Part shown: positions 3,104 to 25,861 of the stretch, one piece after another
How the letters are laid out: each line of letters opens with the position of its first letter
How positions within the stretch are numbered: position 1 is the stretch's first letter
NCBI GenBank assembly: GCA_964035545.1
Contig: CAXIUT010000258.1
Location: forward strand, 1-25,861
Reading direction: 5' to 3'
Origin: Bugula neritina
Taxonomy: Eukaryota; Animalia; Bryozoa
Length of the DNA stretch: 25,861 bases
Notes under the pieces: model-generated
What the model was told of the DNA's origin: nothing
The model's input: only the letters and a program-made list of their open reading frames with translations
Databases searched by the model: none
Translations under genes and position numbers: made by a program

Positions 3104-3793
3104 TCAAGTCCTTTTGAGAAATTTCCTCAAAAAGCGGCTACCTGCTTTTATGTAAACTATTTTTTCTTTCTTCTTGAGTTTTCCCATCATCGAAACCACC
3201 ATTTTGAATTCCACTCTCATAAATCTTTCAAAAATAACCCTGAAAACTCTTGATTCTTCTTCAGGAAGTAGTCCATTTTGACACATAGACTGAATTGTTC
3301 GAGGTCTGACATAGTTTGGGTTAACTTTGATATGTTTTTGGATCTCCTTTATGCAGTTTTTGAATTTTCTTTGATTCTCTTCAGAATTAGCCCCAAAAAG
3401 TCTCCAGAGTTAAGAGTGCTGATAGACGAAGGAAATGAACAGTTTAAAGATGTTGGAAGGTAGATTTCTATCTTTTTTTTGCCTTTTCTTATCAAAGCTG
3501 TCTTATCTATCCTAAATTTAGAAATAAGTTACTCTTTTCTTAAAATGAAAGGGTTTAAGTTTAGATTTTGTTATCTTCTAAATAATCTAAGAAGGAACTT
3601 GTTTATCCTTTCCTTAATCATTTTCTTGAGAAGTCTCGATCTTCGAGTTTTGAAGAACTTCTGTCTTCTCAATTTTATTTTGAAAAATATTGTGATAAGA
3701 GCTAGGAATGGGATAGGGAGGAGCAAAGACTGGCCATGAACTATTAAAGAAGGGATAGCTGAAGGAAATACAAGTGAGTTAAGAATTCCACAT
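3104..3793 (-). CDS. 229 aa hypothetical basic protein, paralog A
   Basis: Open 690 nt from ATG 3793 to TGA 3106-3104. Collinear, same length and frame as the paralog at 5869-6558, with many synonymous differences. Conserved C-terminal block DRNLPSNIFKLFISFV...FRVIFERFM. Confidence 0.85.
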
Positions 3794-3865
3794 TTAATAT
3801 ATTATAATCAATTGACGAGTAAAGCGTATAAAACCCAGAAAATCTCTTGCTTTTTGGGTTTTATA
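3794..3865 (-). promoter_or_regulatory. Conserved upstream block with inverted repeat (paralog A); copy at 6559-6628
   Basis: About 50 nt immediately 5' of the ATG is identical in both diverged copies, followed by arms TATAAAACCCA / TGGGTTTTATA (3827-3865). Function is inferred. Confidence 0.45.
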
Positions 3866-4483
3866 AAGGAAATAATTGGTTAACTATGATAATATTAAAA
3901 GTTCTATCTGTTCAGAGTATGAGAAGAATTAAATATTTGATTTTTTTATATTTTCTTTCATGAATTCGTGATGAAAAAAATATGAGTAAACATCAATTAA
4001 TATTGTTATCTTCTGAGAAGATATTTATTCAAAATTATTATTATATTTGAAAACACTCTTATTTAAAGTTCTTTTATTAGTTTAAATGCTTTTCTTATGA
4101 CCCCCTCATAATTTTATTATATAGTCCATCTCGAAATAAAACATAAAATGTAATATTTTTAGCTATATTTATCTCAATCTTTTAGTTTCAATGGCTATTC
4201 ATCTTTAAAAGAATTTTAGTTTATGATAAAATAGTTATCTACAGCTTATAAAGTTTATCATGAGTTTTTCATCGTAATAAAATTTAATTAATAAATATAA
4301 CAAAGTTAATATCAATAAACTGAACTTTCTCTATAAGTTCTACTGTGACTCTGATGACTGACATTTCAAAGAATATTATTTGTAGAACCCTTAAGACTTT
4401 CAAAACTTTGAAAGGTTATTTCGTATTATATAAAATTTAATTTAATATTTGTGATTTAATTAATCAAGTATAATCATACTTGT

Positions 4484-4849
4484 ATGAGTATTCCAGCTAG
4501 ATAGGCTCTTAAACTCATAGCTAAGAACGCAAACAATCCTAAGTTTTTGCTGCTTGATGTGCGTACTCTTCCAGAACGTCAAGCTCTTTCCATTCCTAAC
4601 TCAGAACATATCCCATTGGATCAAATTCAAAAGTCTTTAAACTCTCTATCGAAGGACACGACTTACTTGATCTACTGCAGAAGTGGACGTCGCAGTTTAG
4701 ACGCTACCAGCATTCTGAAACAACAAGGATTCGAGGCTATAAACATGGAAGGAGGGATCATCGAATGGTAAAATCTAACGTCTGCCTAGAATTCCAAGAC
4801 AGAAAAAGAAAATAAGAAGGAATCTCAGTCATGGTGCAACATTATTTGA
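4484..4849 (+). CDS. Single-domain rhodanese (sulfurtransferase) with C-terminal CaaX box, 121 aa, copy 1
   Basis: LLDVRT, active-site loop YCRSGRRS, NMEGGIIEW. Reading through TAG/TAA gives N-terminus MSIPAREALKLI and C-terminus ...SWCNII-TGA. Confidence 0.93.
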
Positions 4850-5133
4850 TAACAGTTGTTGCTTCTAGATAAAACACCAGTTTTTGATAATCGAAACTTG
4901 AATTTACATTTCTCTTTAATAAAATTTACAACACAATATTTAATAATCTCTTAACAAGTTCAGCAGTCTTAGAGTCTTTGAAATTTTAAGAAGAAAAGAT
5001 GTTGTTTATCCTTTTCTATTGGAAATTCAAAATAAATTCAAAATCATTACAAAAGTATTCAAAAGTATTCAAACTCTTATCCTAAAGTATTCCATCTTTA
5101 AATCTACATTCTTTCCATTCCTTTTAGAAATTA

Positions 5134-5711
5134 ATGAAGATCTTCAAACCTCTCCTTGCACTACTCCTCATCTTCCCTCTAGTCTTATCTCTTAGTCCAG
5201 TACCTATCTATCTATTTAGACTACACCTATCTTCCAAACTAAACTCAAAGGACCTTTTAACTGCTAGGTCAAAGCCTATGGAAACTTCGACATAGAAAAA
5301 CCTATCTGGAAGTAAGACTAAGATGAACTAAACCAAGCTCAGAAAGCAATAGACTAGATGATTTCCCACTATCATCGCTCTAACTTTCCAAGAGGTCCTA
5401 CCTACTCACTTGAGTTCTATCGAGATAGTTCTCTTAACACTGTTGCCTACATCTTCTACAAGCAAAAAGACACCAAAATTACTAAATACTATTCTCTCAA
5501 GATAGAAGACGGACCATACAAAGATAAAACTTACTTCATGGGTCATGAAGAGACAGCAGGAGTAAGACCAGGTCATGAAATGCCATTGATGAACTATAAA
5601 TATCTCTTTCTTGAAAGGATAATATCAGATACTTTACGAGATGCACTACCTATTTTGAATAGACAAAAAAAAAACATTCTACGAAGGTATTTATCTAATT
5701 ATCTCTTCTGA
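5134..5711 (+). CDS. Truncated, chimeric copy of the large secreted protein (~185 aa); possibly a pseudogene
   Basis: Matches 7884-8357 up to 5607 (signal peptide, 20-nt intron 5200-5219), then runs about 34 codons into unrelated sequence and stops at TGA 5709-5711. Confidence 0.65.
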
Positions 5712-5868: not shown

Positions 5869-6558
5869 TCAAGTCTTTTTGAGAAATTATCTCAAAAAAC
5901 TGTTACCTGCCTTTAAATAGACCATTCTATCCTTTCTTTTGATCTTTGCCATCATCGAAACTATCATTTTAAACTCCACAGTCATAAATCTTTCAAATAT
6001 AATCCTGAAAACCCTTGATTCTTCTTTAGAAAGCAATTCATTTTGGCACATAGATTGAATCATCCGAGGTCTGACGTAGTTCGGGTTAACTTTGATATGT
6101 TTCTGGATCTCCTTTATGCAGTTTTTGAATTTTCTTCGATTCTCCTCAGACTTAACTCCAAAGAGTTTCCAAGGCTAGGAATGCTGGTAGACAAAGGAGA
6201 TGAACAGTTTGAAGATGTTGGAAGGGATGTTTCTGTCTTTTTTTTGTTTTTTCTTTCCAAAGCTATCTTATCTATCCTAAATTTAGAAATAAGTTACTCT
6301 TTTCTTATAATGAAAGGGTTTATGTTTTTATTTGCCTATCTTTTAGACAGTCTATGGTTAACCTTTTTTATCCTTTCCAAATTCATTTTATCGATAAATC
6401 TCGATCTTCGACTTCTGAATAACTTCTGTTTTCTCAATCTTATTTTTAAAAATATTGTGATAAGAGCCAAGAATGGGGTAGGGAGGAGCAAAGACTGGCC
6501 ATGGACCATTACTAAAGGGATAACTTAAGGGAATACAGGATAGTTGCGAATTCCACAT
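5869..6558 (-). CDS. 229 aa hypothetical basic protein, paralog B
   Basis: Open 690 nt from ATG 6558 to TGA 5871-5869; aligns codon-for-codon with 3104-3793. Confidence 0.85.
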
Positions 6559-7233
6559 TTAATATATTATAATCAATTGACGAGTAAAGCGTATAAAACC
6601 CAGAAAATATATTCTTTTCTGGTTTTATGAATTAAATAGATGGTTAAAAATGATCATACTGAAAAATTCCATCTTTGCTGAGAACGAGAACTTTGAAAGT
6701 TTGTCTTGCTTTAAATATTCTTAAGTAATTGTTTTGAAGAATTTATTTTTTAAGATAACTTAATAATGTCCTCTTCATAACAGATATTCTTTCAAAATTC
6801 TTGATATCTAACTTTATTTAAGAATAATTCTTTTATTAGTTTCAATGCTTTTGCAATGACCCCTCATAATTTGATTATAAAGTTCTTCCTCAAATAAAAA
6901 AAAATGCGATTTTTTTTATCAGAAATCATCTAATACTCTTAGTTTTATGAATTCTTCATCACCAAAAGAATTTTAGTTAATGATAAAACTGTTATCTGCT
7001 ATCTTAAAAAGTTAGTCATGAATTTTTTACCATAATAAAATCATAAATATATAAATAAAGTCAATATCAATAAACTAGAACATTACTATGAGTGCCACTA
7101 TGACTCTAATGACTAATATTTCAAATATTATTATTTATAGAACTCTTAAGACTTTCAAAAGTAGTTAATATCTGATTATCATAAAGTTAAATAAATATCT
7201 GAGATTTAATTAATCAAGTATAATCATACTTGT

Positions 7234-7599
7234 ATGAGTATTCCAGCTAGATAGGCTCTTAAACTCATAGCTAAGAACGCAAACAATCCTAAGTTTTTGC
7301 TGCTTGATGTGCGTACTCTTCCAGAACGTCAAGCTCTTTCCATTCCTAACTCAGAACATATCCCATTGGATCAAATTCAAAAGTCTTTAAACTCTCTATC
7401 GAAGGACACGACTTACTTGATCTACTGCAGAAGTGGACGTCGCAGTTTAGACGCTACCAGCATTCTGAAACAACAAGGATTCGAGGCTATAAACATGGAA
7501 GGAGGGATCATCGAATGGTAAAATCTAACGTCTGCCTAGAATTCCAAGACAGAAAAAGAAAATAAGAAGGAATCTCAGTCATGGTGCAACATTATTTGA
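7234..7599 (+). CDS. Single-domain rhodanese with C-terminal CaaX box, 121 aa, copy 2
   Basis: Appears identical to 4484-4849 at offset 2750. Confidence 0.93.
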
Positions 7600-7883
7600 T
7601 AACAGTTGTTGCTTCTAGATAAAACACCAGTTTTTGATAATCGAAACTTGAATTTACATTTCTCTTTAATAAAATTTACAACACAATATTTAATAATCTC
7701 TTAACAAGTTCAGCAGTCTTAGAGTCTTTGAAATTTTAAGAAGAAAAGATGTTGTTTATCCTTTTCTATTGGAAATTCAAAATAAATTCAAAATCATTAC
7801 AAAAGTATTCAAAAGTATTCAAACTCTTATCCTAAAGTATTCCATCTTTAAATCTACATTCTTTCCATTCCTTTTAGAAATTA

Positions 7884-10800
7884 ATGAAGATCTTCAAACC
7901 TCTCCTTGCACTACTCCTCATCTTCCCTCTAGTCTTATCTCTTAGTCCAGTACCTATCTATCTATTTAGACTACACCTATCTTCCAAACTAAACTCAAAG
8001 GACCTTTTAACTGCTAGGTCAAAGCCTATGGAAACTTCGACATAGAAAAACCTATCTGGAAGTAAGACTAAGATGAACTAAACCAAGCTCAGAAAGCAAT
8101 AGACTAGATGATTTCCCACTATCATCGCTCTAACTTTCCAAGAGGTCCTACCTACTCACTTGAGTTCTATCGAGATAGTTCTCTTAACACTGTTGCCTAC
8201 ATCTTCTACAAGCAAAAAGACACCAAAATTACTAAATACTATTCTCTCAAGATAGAAGACGGACCATACAAAGATAAAACTTACTTCATGGGTCATGAAG
8301 AGACAGCAGGAGTAAGACCAGGTCATTAAATGCCATTGATGAACTACAAATATCTCTCTACTGAAAAAAATCATTCCTTCAGTAACTATCTTTTAGCTCA
8401 AGCCAGTGGAAGCAGTAGAATCGTTTATTCTCCTTCAGATATTTTGGAAATCAAGTCATGGACATTTCCTAATAGTGAACTCTACCTTCTCAAATGCAAA
8501 AATCCAAACGCATCATCAACTTATTTCACTCTTTTGCACGTAGATAAAATTTACACTTTATTGGACTATACTAACTTACCTCCCATGAAATGCCCATAGA
8601 AATTTGACTACTTATACTTCAACTTCTACATCAAAAAGTTCATGAACGCCCTCTATCATTTCAGACCCTTCAAATCTCAAAAATCAATTCAACACATCGT
8701 TTTTTGTTAGATGTTTATAGATCCTTTATACTAAGACGGCATTCACATCATGGTCGTGTTAAATTTGCATTTAGAGAGAAGAATATCAGCCAAAAAATAT
8801 AGCAGAAATATGGGAATTTTATGGAATACCATTGGACATGCCAGATATTCTATTCGGTATCTACCAATTCAAGGATGTTCATTATTAGATTAATTTAAAT
8901 ACAACAAACCTGAAGAAAATAAATTCCATAATCAGTCATATTTCAACAATAACTAATATGACTAACGAATCGGCAATGGAACCAGCGACTAGAAACAGTA
9001 AAAATTACTAAATAGAAGTTTAGCGCTAATTTTCAAATAAAATTAAGGATTCAAAAAAATATATCATGTTGATTACCCACTATTCCGAATCTTTTCATGT
9101 GAAACACATTACAGATCAAGAATTTATCATCATTACTTGAGATTTGATCACAGGTATCCGACTCACAGAGGTCTACGCATCTGGATGAGAGTTCTTCTCA
9201 CTTCTCAATCTTTCAACCCCTTTACCTAGAATAACTACTCTCAAGCTATTGCTAAACAAAATTAATATCAACTGGAATACTATTTGGCTAATGGAACTGA
9301 TTAATATATAAGGAACCTTCATGTAGTTTTCCATCAATATTGTCCCATTTTCGGAGGAGAGTTCTAGCTAGAATTTGCCTATAAAGTAAAGTTAAGCAGG
9401 TAAGTATGCTTCATTAAAAGAAGTTTTATAAAAGATATTTTAAACAAGAAAACTTTCTATATAGGAGATTCAGATGTAAAGAGAAAAGATACCAACCAAG
9501 TTAGAAGTTAGTCACTTCATAGATGTTTTGTCGAGCCAATATGTAACAAAATAACCGAAAGAGGACTATCTAATAACTAAATAGTTGATTTTATCAATAA
9601 AAATAGAAATCTGTTAAAAGATGCTAAAGATGTAAGTTTATAGAGATAAAATATCAAAGATATTGTTAAAATTGATCTGGATGTTGTTTAGTTAGCCGAT
9701 ATGTGGATTGTTTGGACTGAGAAAGATGGAATCAAAGGGAAGTTTATTGTTAGTTTGGATTAGAGAGATAGATATTTAGTTTTGGGCTATTAAGAAAAGA
9801 AATTAGAATAAAATAATTAAAATAATTAGAATAGTAGTAATGAGGGTAATAATAATTAAAATAATGGAAATAATCAATAAAATGGAAATAATAACAATAA
9901 CAATAATAATAACAATAATAATAATAATAATAACAATAAACCTCCACTAATCGGTTCTAATTCAGGCAAAACAGACCCAAATATAATTCCATCATATACT
10001 CTTACTGGCAACAATGATTTACAAAAATCCTAAATAGATAAATTTTATCCCTACCTTTTAAACCAAATCCTACAAAACGTCCAAAACCCATGCTCCCAAA
10101 TACAAAAAATCCAATACTACATCGACCCACTAAACAAGTTAATAGCCTTCATGCTTAACTGTCCCTCAAGAAATACCATCTACTAGCTAATTTACCTCCA
10201 ATAAACAAAAAAATATCACTACATGGGATCAAAAATACAATCAATCCTTCCCGATCAATATTGGCAAGTTCAACCTGTTCTAGCCAGTAATGGATTGGTT
10301 AGTTTTATTCGAGAGGAGATTAAAAATGTAGTTGGTGATATGGCTTCTTTGGGGGAGATCTTGTTTACGAGTAGAATTAGGTTTGTTAAGGGGTAATTTG
10401 CTTTTGTTGGGTTTTCACTTACAGATAATAGTAATTTACAAGGGGAATTTTTAATGATTGATAATAAGTGGAATAAAATTAGTCTTAATATTGTTTCAGT
10501 AGGAAAGAATGGAAATAATCAAGGTATTGGAAATAGTCAAGGTATTGGAAACAATCAAGGTATTGGAAATAATGGAAATAATAACAACCTAGATGGCAAT
10601 TTTGGAAACAATCTAGGTGGAAATTTTGGAAACAATCAAGGTTCTTCTAAATATGGAGGAATATTCACCTTATTCCCAAAACCATCTCCTCCAAAACTAG
10701 TATACAAAATCATGAATCCTAACTAAGTTCGATCAGACCCTTATCTCCTTCAAATATACCAATTACTTGTTCCTAATCTCCCATCATATCTGACAAAATT

Positions 10801-11239
10801 GAACATAAACTAGGTCTAAAAAGCAACATTCTCTAACAAAACCATAGTCTACCGCATCTACTACGGCCCATCTCCTTCCAACAGTCAATACTACCTCTCA
10901 ATCTTCTTCGATCCAAAAATAAACCAAGTAATTAACCTTGAAGTAAAATAATTCAAAAAACCTTCAATTCCTTCAATTCCTAACTTACCACATCAACCAT
11001 CTATCTGCTAGCCTCCTTAAACAAAAAATCTAATTAAGAGGATTTTTACTTAATGGGTGTTTAAGAGACATGAAGAGTTGAGAGGGAGTCAACCTACATC
11101 AATGAAGATGACAATATCTGGAAGAAGAGCTGTATGCATGATGACCTTTGTTACTGATGATAACAGACAATTTTCAGCTCAATTGGAAATGAATATGGAG
11201 AACAATGAGGTCAGGGAGTTGTCATTCAGACAGGATTGA
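7884..11239 (+). CDS. ~1111 aa secreted or surface protein with Asn/Gly-rich linkers
   Basis: Signal peptide MKIFKPLLALLLIFPLVLSLS, 20-nt intron 7950-7969, then one frame with no TGA until 11237-11239. Joins supplied ORFs 8108, 8330, 10454 and 11057. Poly-Asn near 9890-9937; NQGIGN and LxGNFGNN repeats near 10516-10636. Confidence 0.88.
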
Positions 11240-11432: not shown

Positions 11433-11951
11433 ATGACAGAACGCAGCCTTCATAGCTCCCAAACCACTTCAAAGCAATGCCGAATTTGTCTAGACAACAC
11501 CAACATATCTGATTTCGTAACACCATGCGACTGCCGAGGATCAATCTAGCACGTCCATCTAACCTGTCTCACCGAATACTTCACCCACAAATTCAAAAAC
11601 ACCTCCTCATCACTCGAACGCCGACGCATGAGATAATCAATATCCTGCTAAATTTGCCACTCCTAAATGCCAAACCTAAAAATCCAATCCTCAAAAAAAT
11701 GCGCCTCATGCGAATAACTAAACAAAAGAGTAGAAGGCGAAGATGTCTTCTTCCTTGTGGTATATATTATCCTCTATATTGGATTTCATGCGGTAGGAAT
11801 AATACTTATTATGCAAGGATAGACCATATCATATGTAATCGGCAGTTTATGGTTATTACTATCAACGATTGCTTTCAATTATGGGTTGTATAAAATAGTC
11901 AAATAGATTTGCTTTGTCAGAGAGGCGCAAGTTAGCTATAACGGCAGGTGA
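11433..11951 (+). CDS. RING-CH (MARCH-type) membrane E3 ubiquitin ligase, 172 aa
   Basis: CRICLD...TPCDCRGSIEHVHLTCL...CEIC (C4HC3 RINGv) followed by two hydrophobic transmembrane segments; TGA 11949-11951. Confidence 0.92.
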
Positions 11952-16339: not shown

Positions 16340-18493
16340 ATGGGAGTTCATAAACTATGGTAGTTACTTCTGACAATAGCCCAACCCGTCTCAATCTAAA
16401 CTCTATCTAATAAGGTACTAGCAATAGACGCCTCAATTTGGATAATGAAAATGTAGACAATATTTACAACAAATTCATAAAAACTAAGATCAATACTAAA
16501 CAAAATAATAATGCTAAAAAGACATAATATTTTACCAATATTCGTTTTTGATGGCACCCCGCCCCTCCTCAAACGACATACTCTCGCCTAAAGAAACAAA
16601 AAAAAATTAGTAGCAAATGAAGTCTAAGCCAGAAAGAAATCATAAATATAAATAGTTAGAATGATCTAAGGCGACAACACCCGCAAAAGCGAACGATAAC
16701 GCCGAATACTCTAAAACTAATCTGAATTGGACACAATAAACACCCAATTATAAAACCTCTAAAAAACAATAAAACAAAACCAAGAAGACCTCCCCACCGA
16801 ACTCCTATAAAAAATATCAATGCAAAGTGAAATCCTCAACACAAAATACAAACTAATGCTCGATCTCACCCATAATACCTAAAATATCCCTACTTCATAC
16901 CCATAGATGAATATTCATAACTAGATCTCGATCTCAAGGTGTAGTATTTGGATTAGCTGCAGTAGTATAAATGGAAACATATCAAGAAGAAAAGAAAAGT
17001 TGGATTGACACAGTAATAAAAAATAAAAAATGATATTTAGATTATTTAGAAGAAAAGTATTATCAGGGATATGCAGGATAATTTATTTCGAAAGATGATG
17101 CAAAAAAATATCAAAATATAAAATGGATTTTAAATTATAGAAACTATCTATAATGGAAAACCAATAATTCAAAAAGAAAAGTACAGTAAAAAAACAATAA
17201 AGGATATCATTTCGCAGGAGGAATGAGAAAATAAAAAATGATCAATGATTTTGGTAAAATCAACTTCCAGTAATAAAAAGATAGTCAATCCTAGGAAGAT
17301 CTAGATCCATTTGTTTCATCTTTTTGCGATCATTCGCTTAAAAATAGCACGAAATCATCTAGTATATCATCGAATGTTAAAATATAGTAGAAAAATTAGT
17401 GGTACAGAGAAGGGCATAAAAGAAATCAACCTAAGATAGTAAAATAGAATAAAAAACATAAAAAAAATTATAATTCTGATTAAAATAAATCATAATCATA
17501 ACCCTATATTCCCTTCAGATAATATACCAACAAAAATGAACCTCAACCTAAAACTTTGTCAACAAATAATAACTCAACCTAAAATATTCTAACAGCCAAC
17601 CACAAGAACCACTAAATCGAGACAACTTACCTTCATTTTCATCATCCGATCCTCAAAACTATCTCAACTCCTCCTCCGACAACCTCTAACTCCAAAATCT
17701 ATTTACCATCTTAGGCATTCCCTTTCTCATAGCTCCAGGTGAAGCATAGGCTGAATGCGCATCCCTATAATAGCAAGGAATAGTAGATGGAATAATAACA
17801 TAAGATTCTGATGTTTTTTTATTTGGTGCTAAAAATGTCTACAGAGGAGTATTCAATCAAAATATCAGATATTATTCTTATGAGAAAATGATAAGAAAAC
17901 TTAAACTAAATCGATAAAAACTTATCATCTTTGCATAACTACTCGGATCTGACTACACCTAAGGTATCAAAGGCATAGGAGTAGTAAATGCTATGTAGAT
18001 ATTGAAAGTTTTTAACACATTTTAGAAATTATAATAATTCAAAAAATGGGCATAACATCCTGATTTATTACTACCCTAAAACTAAACAACAACAGCTATA
18101 TTAGCCAGTAAATCAGCATAATAAAAATAATTTTTCAATCTCCACCAAAAATACAAAAACTACTGGTACATACATCCAACTTTCGGCAACGATACCATCC
18201 ACAAAGCCTACCTAAAACCAAACACAGTAAATCCCTAACAAATAAAATCAATGAAATCTAAAGGCACTTTTTCCCAGAAATAAATAAAAATAGATCTATT
18301 AGATAAAATTCTCAAATAAAAACTAGAGATGAATCAATAGTAATATGATCATTATCATAAGTTGTTATTGATTCAGTATGATAACAAACGTAATAATACT
18401 TTATTGAACTATTTTAGAAGAGATGAGGAGGCGGAATTGGCCAAAATACGAAGCAAAAGGTTGCAAAAATCAATATAAACAGGACAACCATGA
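16340..18493 (+). CDS. RAD2: XPG/RAD2-family 5' structure-specific endonuclease
   Basis: N domain MGVHKLW...LAIDASIW...PIFVFDGTPPLLKRHTL; I domain LGIPFLIAPGEAEAECA...ITEDSDVFLFGAKNVYR; H3TH LLGSDYTEGIKGIGVVNAMEIL; C-terminal SKRL. The spacer between N and I domains has three -1 frame breaks (see findings). Confidence 0.93.
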
Positions 18494-19568: not shown

Positions 19569-21302
19569 ATGCCAGGTCGTTCAGCCCACCTATCCCCCCT
19601 CCAACCTGACAACTCCAGCCTGCTGCACCTCCCCACCGAACCCCAAACAACCCAAATCTACCACTTCTGTCATTGCTTCCAAACCCACCAGCACAACTTC
19701 ATAACTCATGCTCTCGAATGGTCATCAAAATGCAGATTATCATAGCTAGTATTAGTAAACCAACCCGAAGTGCTAAATTAGGTCATAAACTAGATCTACT
19801 AAAGGAAGTATGTGGTATTAGACTGTGTTAGTGAATACAACATGAACTATAAGGGATTTATCAGTTTGTTTCTGATAGGATTCAATGATAAAGGATATCT
19901 AGTTGATTCGATACAATTACATAGATAGCTGCATCATTTGAAAATGGTTTTATAGGATTCGAATATAGTTAAATTCGTGTATCGGATGTTCGATTTCATA
20001 AACGATATCAAACGAGAATACAAAGCCTTCGGATCAAATTATTTTGATTTATAGATGCTATAAAAACGACTACACCCCTCAAAAACAATAAACAAAACAA
20101 TCAACCAATCCGGATAGAGACCAATCCAACAATAAATAATCTAATAGCTACAATATAAATACAACTCATTGATAAAATATCTATCACAGCTAAAATATCT
20201 ACTAGAATTATAATAAAAACAATAATATTCAACTTACTGCTATTCCAACCACTACTAACTACTACTGAAAGAATACCAACATAAAATATATAATTTGGAG
20301 GAATAACAAAAACAATATTAATATTTATTGAATTAGTAAATAGTCAAAATCAAATAATAAAAATAAAATTGTATTGATCCTAATTACCAATATCAGATAT
20401 CATATCTTTATCCTTAGAGTGAGAGATAAAAAAATCTATGCGGAATGTTGCTGGGCTGGCGCTAACACATGGCCAAAATATGGGATGTTCGACCTTCCAG
20501 CATAGTCAAATACCAACAACTGCTATCCATTGCAATCGATCGACCAAATTCAATCCTATAAATGCAAAAGTTACTAGGCGATGCCGTAAACACACTAAAT
20601 ATCATCCCAAAAATACTATAAATAATAAATTTATAATCATAGTTATACTAGAATAGCCAGCATTAGCTAAACGTCAGATCGAAGAAGATCAAATAGAGAA
20701 ATATCCGACATCTTCTAAAAGATTTAAAATGGGATAGCAAATAAGAATGGCTCAATAGAAAAAATGACTAAAGTATCAAATTATACAAAGAAATAGTATC
20801 AGTAGTGGAGCTAGACAGTTCAATTGTAGATTAGTTTACATAGGGAATGAAAGATGGTATAGTTGGTAGTAAAGATATGAACAGATTTATTAAATATGCA
20901 TAATACTTCAGAAATAAAAATCATAAAAAATTGCAATAGTTTCATAATAACCTACCACCTTTAGCATCATATAAAGAAGAATCAGAGTGGTCAGAGTAAG
21001 ATGATGATGATTTTTTGGTGACAACTTTCAAATCATAAACTTCTATCTTTGATTCTTCAGAGAAGTTGTAAAAACAAGAAATTAGAACTTCTCCCACTCT
21101 CAGATGCGGAACTTCCATCACCTGCATCGGAGAGGGGTAGAATAAAATCAATTTGCCTTAAAATATATAATAAATATACTTGAAGGCTGCCTCTGTGAAG
21201 AAGGGGTATCAGAAAGTGCAGAAGAAGAGTAAGAAGGAGTTGAAGGAGGAAGATGAGTTCGTACCGACATGGTAGTAAATAAAGTTACTACTAGATGTAT
21301 GA
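19569..21302 (+). CDS. RRP6/EXOSC10-like exonuclease-fold plus HRDC protein, catalytically degenerate, 577 aa
   Basis: Open 1734 nt. YKGFISL...YLVDSIQL...HLKMVLEDSNIVKFVY...NYFDL parallels the RRP6 exo domain; LLGWREHMAKIWDVRPSSIV...LLSIAIDRP parallels HRDC. Confidence 0.82.
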
Positions 21303-25082: not shown

Positions 25083-25693
25083 ATGCAACAAGATAGAGGC
25101 ACCAAAATCAAGAAGATGTAAGTGAAGGGATATATAGTCAAGTATAAAATAAGAAATTAGAAGAGGATACGGAAAAGATGGTAAAGTGATGGTTATTCAG
25201 ATCAAAGAACTGTAAAAAATAAAAATTATCAAAGAACAAGAACTATTAAATCTTAAAAAAAAGTATCATCAATAATAAGTAGAACTGAACAACCTCCATA
25301 AACCCAATAAATATAAAAAAAGTAAACTAAAACTAAAACAAATCAACCAGCAAAATTATATAGTAATCAAAAATCGATATCTAGGCTATGGCAAATAAAT
25401 CGCCAAAACACATGAAAGCTAGCGAGTCAAAAAGCAGCTAAAGAAGATAGTGATAGAGAGCAGCGAGAGTGAGAAAGAAGAGAACGATGGTTCTAATTTG
25501 AAATATTTTTTAACAACAATGGGAATGTAGAAATATTTTGATGCATTCCAAGCCAACAACATTCTTAGTTTACCAAAATTAAGAAGTAAATGTTAAATAA
25601 GTAGACATCAAATAGGCCCAGCTGAAAGAAATGAATATTCCCATTAAAGATCATGTCAAAATCATTAAAAAAATCAGGGAAATGGGATTCTGA
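25083..25693 (+). CDS. 183 aa coiled-coil plus C-terminal SAM-domain protein
   Basis: Introns 25118-25137 (20 nt), 25181-25200 (20 nt) and 25586-25604 (19 nt) give 552 nt. SAM pattern LKYFLTTMGMEKYFDAFQANNI...QLKEMNIPIKDHVKIIKKI. Confidence 0.85.
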
Positions 25694-25768: not shown

Positions 25769-25861
25769 GGGGTTGGGGTTGGGGTTGGGGTTGGGGTTGG
25801 GGTTGGGGTTGGGGTTGGGGTTGGGGTTGGGGTTGGGGTTGGGGTTGGGGTTGGGGTTGGG
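25769..25861. repeat. Right telomere, (GGGGTT)n
   Basis: Perfect G4T2 repeat to the end of the window; reverse complement of the left telomere. Confidence 0.99.

Follow-up and report, generated by a model that had tools for sequence, protein, structure and literature searches.

The stretch of DNA analysed here (the window) is contig C267, with 25,861 bases, of an assembly deposited under the name Bugula neritina. It represents an entire macronuclear chromosome from a ciliate whose DNA was sequenced along with that of a larger host. We conclude with high confidence that TAA and TAG serve as regular glutamate codons in the nuclear genes of this ciliate, with TGA as the sole stop codon. This corresponds to NCBI translation table 30. 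The code itself is already known, and the organism is a further case of it, not a new code.

An earlier note on the window had proposed that both codons mean glutamate, largely from a gene for an XPG/Rad2-type nuclease. The proposal is borne out by profile statistics on 118 codons with correct controls, by tubulin paralogues and by a catalytic Glu of XPG. The glutamate meaning rests on sequence comparison throughout.

HSP70 Profile Test

A family search of the whole assembly returned five HSP70-family genes on ciliate contigs, with 4–35 in-frame TAA or TAG codons each. A stop-free piece of BiP (389 residues) yielded 120 homologues, and a hidden Markov model (HMM) was built from 33 full-length sequences that are at most about 70% identical. 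Six open frames of the five ciliate genes were aligned to the HMM with X at every TAA and TAG. For each amino acid the log-odds were summed over match columns.

Glutamate is the best residue for both codons. For TAA (86 aligned codons) Glu scores −40.5, compared to −122 for Asp and −178 for Lys. For TAG (32 aligned codons) the scores are 2.9 for Glu, −49 for Asp and −64 for Lys. The lead of Glu over Asp is 82 log units for TAA and 52 for TAG. If only the four close orthologue frames are used, Glu again exceeds Asp, with 13.5 versus −33 for TAA and 25 versus −20 for TAG. The control codons all return their own residue: GAA and GAG give Glu, CAA gives Gln, and AAA and AAG give Lys.

Columns with a Glu consensus hold 26 of the 86 TAA codons (p = 5e-08) and 13 of the 32 TAG codons (p = 3e-06), where 9.4% are expected. 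No enrichment of TAA or TAG was seen on Gln, Lys or Tyr columns of this alignment. The 169 conserved-Glu columns are occupied by GAA (58), TAA (18), GAG (16) and TAG (10). One such site is LGG-E-DFD, where BiP has TAA and mitochondrial HSP70 has TAG.

These columns also bear on two other ciliate codes. The commonest ciliate variant, NCBI table 6, reads TAA and TAG as glutamine (PMC11687900). In the profile test Gln fails to reach the top four residues for TAA as well as for TAG. Not one of the 58 conserved-Gln columns carries TAA or TAG, and 23 carry CAA. The second is a split code known from a ciliate of the same class, Oligohymenophorea sp. PL0344, in which TAA is lysine and TAG is glutamate (PMC10553269). 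Five TAA codons do stand on the 189 conserved-Lys columns, as this code would have it, but GAA stands there six times, so that TAA does not exceed GAA on them. For TAA the score of Lys falls short of that of Glu by 137 log units, and TAA in LGG-E-DFD of BiP lies on a conserved Glu.

On the minus strand of contig C291, a BiP paralogue appears to be split by a 23-nt GT-AG intron, judging by homology across the junction.

Tubulins, a Direct Repeat and Paralogues in the Window

At many Glu sites, two alpha-tubulin paralogues (contigs C87 and C16) are distinguished by codon choice alone. Counted per copy, their TAA and TAG codons are paired nine times as TAA/GAA, once as TAA/GAG and once as TAG/GAG. 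Six more face each other as TAA-or-TAG against TAA-or-TAG. The paired sites include the conserved Glu of FFS-E-TGAGK, VV-E-PYNS and WYVG-E-GMEEGEF. There are three exceptions: two codons face other residues in variable stretches and one is unpaired at the C-terminal end. Beta-tubulin, which is free of TAA and TAG, has Glu at most of the positions homologous to the alpha-tubulin sites. Both the TAA codons at conserved Glu sites of alpha-tubulin and the interchange of TAA and TAG at the same sites speak against TAA as lysine.

Within the window, a direct repeat of 1,139 nt (copies at 4453–5591 and 7203–8341) contributes a further comparison. The copies differ at a single base, G at 5577 and T at 8327, so that the first copy has GAA (5577–5579) where the second has TAA (8327–8329). 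The earlier note had described this duplicate as near identical; the GAA/TAA change is in fact its only difference, and it also counts against lysine. We reject a PL0344-type meaning of TAA on the profile scores, the Lys columns, the conserved Glu sites, the exchange of TAA with TAG and this repeat. We consider the split code extremely improbable.

The repeat doubles the 5′ part of a 1,195-codon gene together with an antisense open frame. A truncated version of this gene, with 269 codons, stands at the end of the first copy.

Two paralogues of the window, A and B (3107–4105 and 5872–6774, both on the minus strand), give a mixed picture. Their alignment contains TAA/CAA, TAA/AAA and TAA/GAA pairs and two TAA/TAG pairs. 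The TAA/CAA and TAA/AAA pairs had been pointed out as counter-examples, and they are present. One TAA/CAA pair would suit table 6, and two TAA/AAA pairs would suit the split code. A Gln-rich tract, which had been said to use CAA only, contains 13 CAA codons and no CAG, TAA or TAG. This tract is at odds with table 6.

The XPG Gene

The XPG gene lies on the plus strand. Its start codon (ATG at 16340) and N domain occupy 16340–17005, with 18 TAA and 4 TAG in frame. The piece at 16481–16588 matches Pfam XPG_N (E = 7e-07). The I domain and the C-terminal part (17540–18490) hold 22 TAA and 5 TAG in frame. Here a piece of 37 residues (17804–17914) matches Pfam XPG_I as well as the structures of human XPG and yeast Rad2. 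Its first residues, DSD (17804), are aligned on D810-S811-D812 of full-length human ERCC5. The earlier identification of the gene as XPG is upheld by these matches.

A TAG lies at 17747–17749, in APGEA[TAG]AEC. It stands 19 codons before the Asp aligned to D810. In human XPG, E791 and D810 are likewise 19 residues apart, and we therefore place this TAG at the position of Glu791. The codon two before it, in GEA[TAG]A, is GAA. Human XPG has seven metal-binding carboxylates: D30, D77, E789, E791, D810, D812 and D861 (human structure, PMC7515719). Gln or Lys at the Glu791 position would not fit the conserved carboxylate.

Table 6 is contradicted by this site as well as by the conserved-Gln columns, the profile test and the CAA-only tract. 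Glutamine has next to no chance of being the meaning of the two codons.

Three further codons of the I domain and C-terminal part had been singled out as conserved acidic positions. Their coordinates, and that of the TAG at 17747, are correct. A TAA at 17801–17803, in IIT[TAA]DSD, directly precedes the DSD aligned to D810-S811-D812. Its coordinate stands, but its human counterpart, residue 809, would be Asp rather than Glu, going by the TDDSD that the earlier note gives for human XPG. A second TAA (17960–17962), in LLGSDYT[TAA]G, follows the conserved Asp of GSDY at a distance of three residues, and we take the human residue opposite it to be Glu. A TAG at 17996–17998, found on direct check in VNAM[TAG]IL, presumably corresponds to the Glu of human AMEIL.

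The gene ends at a TGA (18491–18493, confirmed in the sequence). For the stretch 16340–18493, the range given in the earlier note, the ATG and TGA ends hold, but a single open frame does not. Five in-frame TGA codons lie between 17006 and 17540, in the frame that the N and I domains have in common, and the gene model over this spacer (17006–17539, plus strand) is provisional. No set of up to four GT-AG introns of 17–36 nt opens the frame. Opening it would take at least three introns of 18–61 nt. The interruptions could stem from introns of larger size, from indels that the assembly introduced in A-runs, or from decay of the spacer.

Reference sequences for XPG were few. A profile-library search with the 37-residue piece returned two short fragments only, and no XPG or FEN1 homologue was found within the loci examined.

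TGA as the Stop Codon and the Use of TAA and TAG

The trusted genes lie on contigs C10, C95, C87, C16, C291, C58, C31 and C314 and in the window. Among their 6,523 codons there is no in-frame TGA. Tubulins, BiP, mitochondrial HSP70 and eRF1 all reach a TGA with C-termini, acidic or other, that are typical of their families. TGA as the only stop, the other half of the earlier proposal, is supported: all trusted genes close with it where their C-terminus is expected, and none contains it internally. Tables 27 and 28, in which TGA is also a sense codon (Trp), are rejected on the same count.

With TGA as the sole stop, open frames in the window reach 1,195 codons. The longest (7652–11236, plus strand) holds 49 TAA and TAG codons (32 TAA and 17 TAG). 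This pattern is far beyond chance.

TGA is read as Trp solely on contig C73. C73 (70.6 kb, 19% G+C) carries atp9 and rps12. Its base composition and these two genes mark it as a ciliate-type mitochondrial genome. A tRNA whose anticodon loop has six bases (TTTAAG), possibly a mitochondrial Leu(UAA), is also present on it twice.

In the trusted genes TAA makes up 2.9% of all codons, TAG 1.0%, GAA 4.6% and GAG 1.2%. The share of TAA and TAG among Glu codons varies greatly between genes: 0% in beta-tubulin, 5% in BiP, about 20–45% in the other chaperones and eRF1, and about 75% in XPG. Genes presumed from their identity to be strongly expressed avoid TAA and TAG. This avoidance is compatible with a scarce decoder tRNA or with residual competition by the release factor.

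Alternatively, TAA and TAG could have a dual meaning. They would mostly be read as Glu, but would also terminate near the 3′ ends of some mRNAs or be decoded inefficiently in competition with eRF1. Context-dependent codes are known in other ciliates (PMC4967479), and the avoidance of both codons in beta-tubulin and BiP is in line with such a code. One alpha-tubulin terminates with VD-TAA-TGA, which makes its true end ambiguous. However, every trusted gene runs on to a TGA at the expected C-terminus, both codons occupy essential internal Glu sites, and a scarce tRNA explains the avoidance equally well. A dual meaning is very unlikely.

Release Factor and Decoder tRNAs

The gene for eRF1 lies on the minus strand of contig C314 (17039–18373). 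Its GTS loop is one residue shorter than in human eRF1 (NG-SV for NGTSM). The YxCxxxF motif is intact (YNCDSRF). By position, QIKD takes the place of NIKS, and where human eRF1 has E55 the gene itself uses a TAA. The mapping of the NIKS region presupposes that there is no insertion or deletion. A database search with the NIKS piece gave no match, the piece being too divergent.

The domain that reads stop codons, to which the earlier note had pointed, is thus altered, both in the gap of the GTS loop and, by position, in QIKD. The altered eRF1 may no longer recognise UAA and UAG. Studies of other ciliates, cited in PMC10553269, are the basis for supposing that changes of this kind confine the factor to UGA.

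A search with an anticodon-loop/T-loop pattern found two tRNA(CUA) genes, one on contig C10 (16787–16858) and one on the minus strand of contig C256 (3981–4052). In both genes the variable loop has four bases and the D loop resembles that of host tRNA-Glu. Related metagenome contigs were scanned for the shared T arm and a YTA anticodon. Here 61 loci were found, 45 with tRNA(CUA) and 16 with tRNA(UUA). Identity between the UUA and CUA families is 85%, and the D and T arms are common to both. Such a shared body would fit a single amino acid as the meaning of TAA and TAG. Metagenome CUA loci show synteny with the C10 gene.

In the assembly itself tRNA(UUA) remained elusive. Two anticodon-loop/T-loop patterns gave 36 and 74 matches, compared to 45 and 77 for the reversed-pattern controls. 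The UUA candidates on small contigs all fail ARAGORN, except the mitochondrial gene on C73. BLAST with the C10 tRNA and a T-arm search allowing two mismatches yielded nothing beyond the two CUA genes and a tRNA-Gly. Since the assembly covers the ciliate incompletely (see below), the missing tRNA(UUA) proves nothing.

The earlier note had suggested a search for tRNA-Glu-derived tRNAs with UUA and CUA anticodons. Two CUA genes are in the genome, UUA is seen in relatives alone, and in sequence identity the tRNAs are about as close to host tRNA-Lys as to host tRNA-Glu. We propose that a UUA paralogue, with the same D and T arms as in the related metagenome contigs, reads TAA here too, and that the suppressor tRNAs would be charged with glutamate.

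Several observations weigh against glutamate as the meaning of TAA and TAG. Most of the statistics come from contigs other than the window, and a single ciliate species is assumed on the strength of shared telomeres, composition and codon pattern. The signal at TAA is less sharp than at GAA, with a mean Glu frequency of 0.29 at TAA columns versus 0.49 at GAA columns. A few TAA codons stand opposite Lys, Asp or Gln in homologues. One TAA of eRF1 would face human Q80 by positional mapping, as table 6 would predict.

The tRNAs add to this list. No nuclear tRNA(UUA) was found in the assembly, although TAA is commoner than TAG. The suppressor tRNAs are 69–71% identical to host tRNA-Glu and 68–71% to host tRNA-Lys, in a panel that does not include Gln. 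The flanks of the tRNA(CUA) on C256 align at 65–71% with six metagenome loci that carry tRNA(UUA) in its place. The body of this tRNA is 75–76% identical to both the CUA and the UUA families and closer to neither. Reads at the C256 tRNA agree with the assembly, and its anticodon shows no variant in the one run that spans it.

The Window as a Ciliate Chromosome in a Mixed Assembly

Telomeres cap both ends of the window. The left one (1–75) consists of C4A2 repeats, with (CCCCAA)n read directly at 6–71, and the right one (25769–25861) of G4T2 repeats, with (TTGGGG)n at 25773–25856. No telomere runs were seen inside the window. Telomeres at both ends and none in between make the window a whole macronuclear chromosome.

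The same telomere repeat occurs on many small contigs of the assembly, which comprises 216 Mb in 321 contigs. The large contigs belong to the host and use the standard code, since the host HSP70 genes (intronless, on large contigs) have no in-frame stops. Sequencing runs from three studies, which bear three organism labels, contain the window stretch; a cobiont that is free-living or epibiotic would be expected to show this distribution.

The ciliate contigs evidently do not make up a full genome: a cytosolic HSP70 and a ciliate 18S are missing, and a single eRF1-domain gene was found.

Contig C10 (21,272 bases) has a telomere at its left end and internal G4T2 runs at 9694–9747, 10934–11011 and 19627–19680. 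The internal runs suggest alternative fragmentation sites or mini-chromosomes joined in the assembly.

Elsewhere in the window, three more codons that the earlier note had listed are where it had placed them. A TAA at 11649–11651 (plus strand, read directly) lies in SC[TAA]IC of a RING-CH-like zinc finger; related fingers presumably carry Glu at this position. A TAG is found in GM[TAG]KY at 25522 and a TAA in WR[TAA] at 20457.

Lineage of the Ciliate

G4T2 telomeres are of the Tetrahymena/Paramecium type. The best named relative of BiP is from Paramecium (68%). The telomere type, the 23-nt intron and Paramecium as best named relative fit Oligohymenophorea. BiP relatives of 87–95% identity are common in Logan, ENA and JGI and occur in one NCBI assembly. 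Eight relatives that were traced stem from runs that are not those of the two known peritrich transcriptomes. There is no named peritrich among the matches of the BiP and mitochondrial S12 searches, and S12 gave no named ciliate.

A search of the assembly for ciliate 18S with a conserved 20-mer found only host-type genes, on C6, C9 and C135. The three are 94–97% alike and have 53–56% G+C. The first lies at 7.11–7.27 Mb of C6. The one on C9 (1476190–1477883) is shortened to 1,694 nt and ends in a run of AT dinucleotides; for these reasons it is probably a decayed copy of the rDNA.

The peritrich nuclear code, NCBI translation table 30, is said to go back to Sanchez-Silva et al. (2003). Both UAA and UAG as glutamate is the code of peritrichs (PMC11687900). 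Species listed with it are Carchesium polypinum, Campanella umbellaria and Opisthonecta henneguyi (PMC4967479; supplement of PMC10553269). Peritrich genomes exist, and peritrichs as well as Paramecium show a narrow distribution of intron lengths (PMC13685798). The organism is probably a peritrich.

Two other origins of the code come into question. A separate, non-peritrich lineage could have reached glutamate for TAA and TAG independently, or a relative of the peritrichs could be in the midst of remodelling its decoders. In the case of remodelling, TAA, the main reassigned codon, would depend on a type of decoder that has not been observed so far, since the gene that is the UAA-reading tRNA of relatives carries CUA here and UUA was not found. 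We consider either origin unlikely. A peritrich with table 30 remains our preferred identification.

Implications

About 300 small contigs of the assembly are those of the ciliate cobiont. They need to be translated with table 30, otherwise every gene fragments. Contamination screens and standard gene callers will misread them.

The assembly offers a genome-level instance of the reassignment to glutamate, with telomere-capped chromosomes, decoder tRNA genes and an eRF1 gene all at hand. The share of TAA and TAG among Glu codons runs from none to about three quarters between genes. This gradient is a usable system for studying the cost of reassigned stop codons.

Comparison with Known Codes

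The closest known system is that of the table 30 peritrichs. There, as here, TAA and TAG are glutamate and TGA is the only stop, and the 23-nt intron fits the intron lengths of peritrichs and Paramecium. On the side of differences, the best named BiP relative is Paramecium and no named peritrich was matched.

Oligohymenophorea sp. PL0344 (PMC10553269) belongs to the same or a close class. It shares TGA as stop and TAG as glutamate, read by a tRNA(CUA). In PL0344, however, TAA is lysine and is read by a Lys-like tRNA(UUA), whereas here TAA is glutamate. The UUA tRNAs of the relatives of our ciliate instead share their body with the CUA tRNAs (85% identity).

Table 6 (Tetrahymena, Paramecium, Oxytricha) likewise uses TAA and TAG as sense codons and TGA alone as stop, and goes with dedicated suppressor tRNAs and an altered eRF1 N domain. 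It differs in the amino acid, which is Gln there and Glu here. Tables 27 and 28 differ in that TGA is also sense (Trp), and no in-frame TGA occurs in the trusted nuclear genes of this ciliate.

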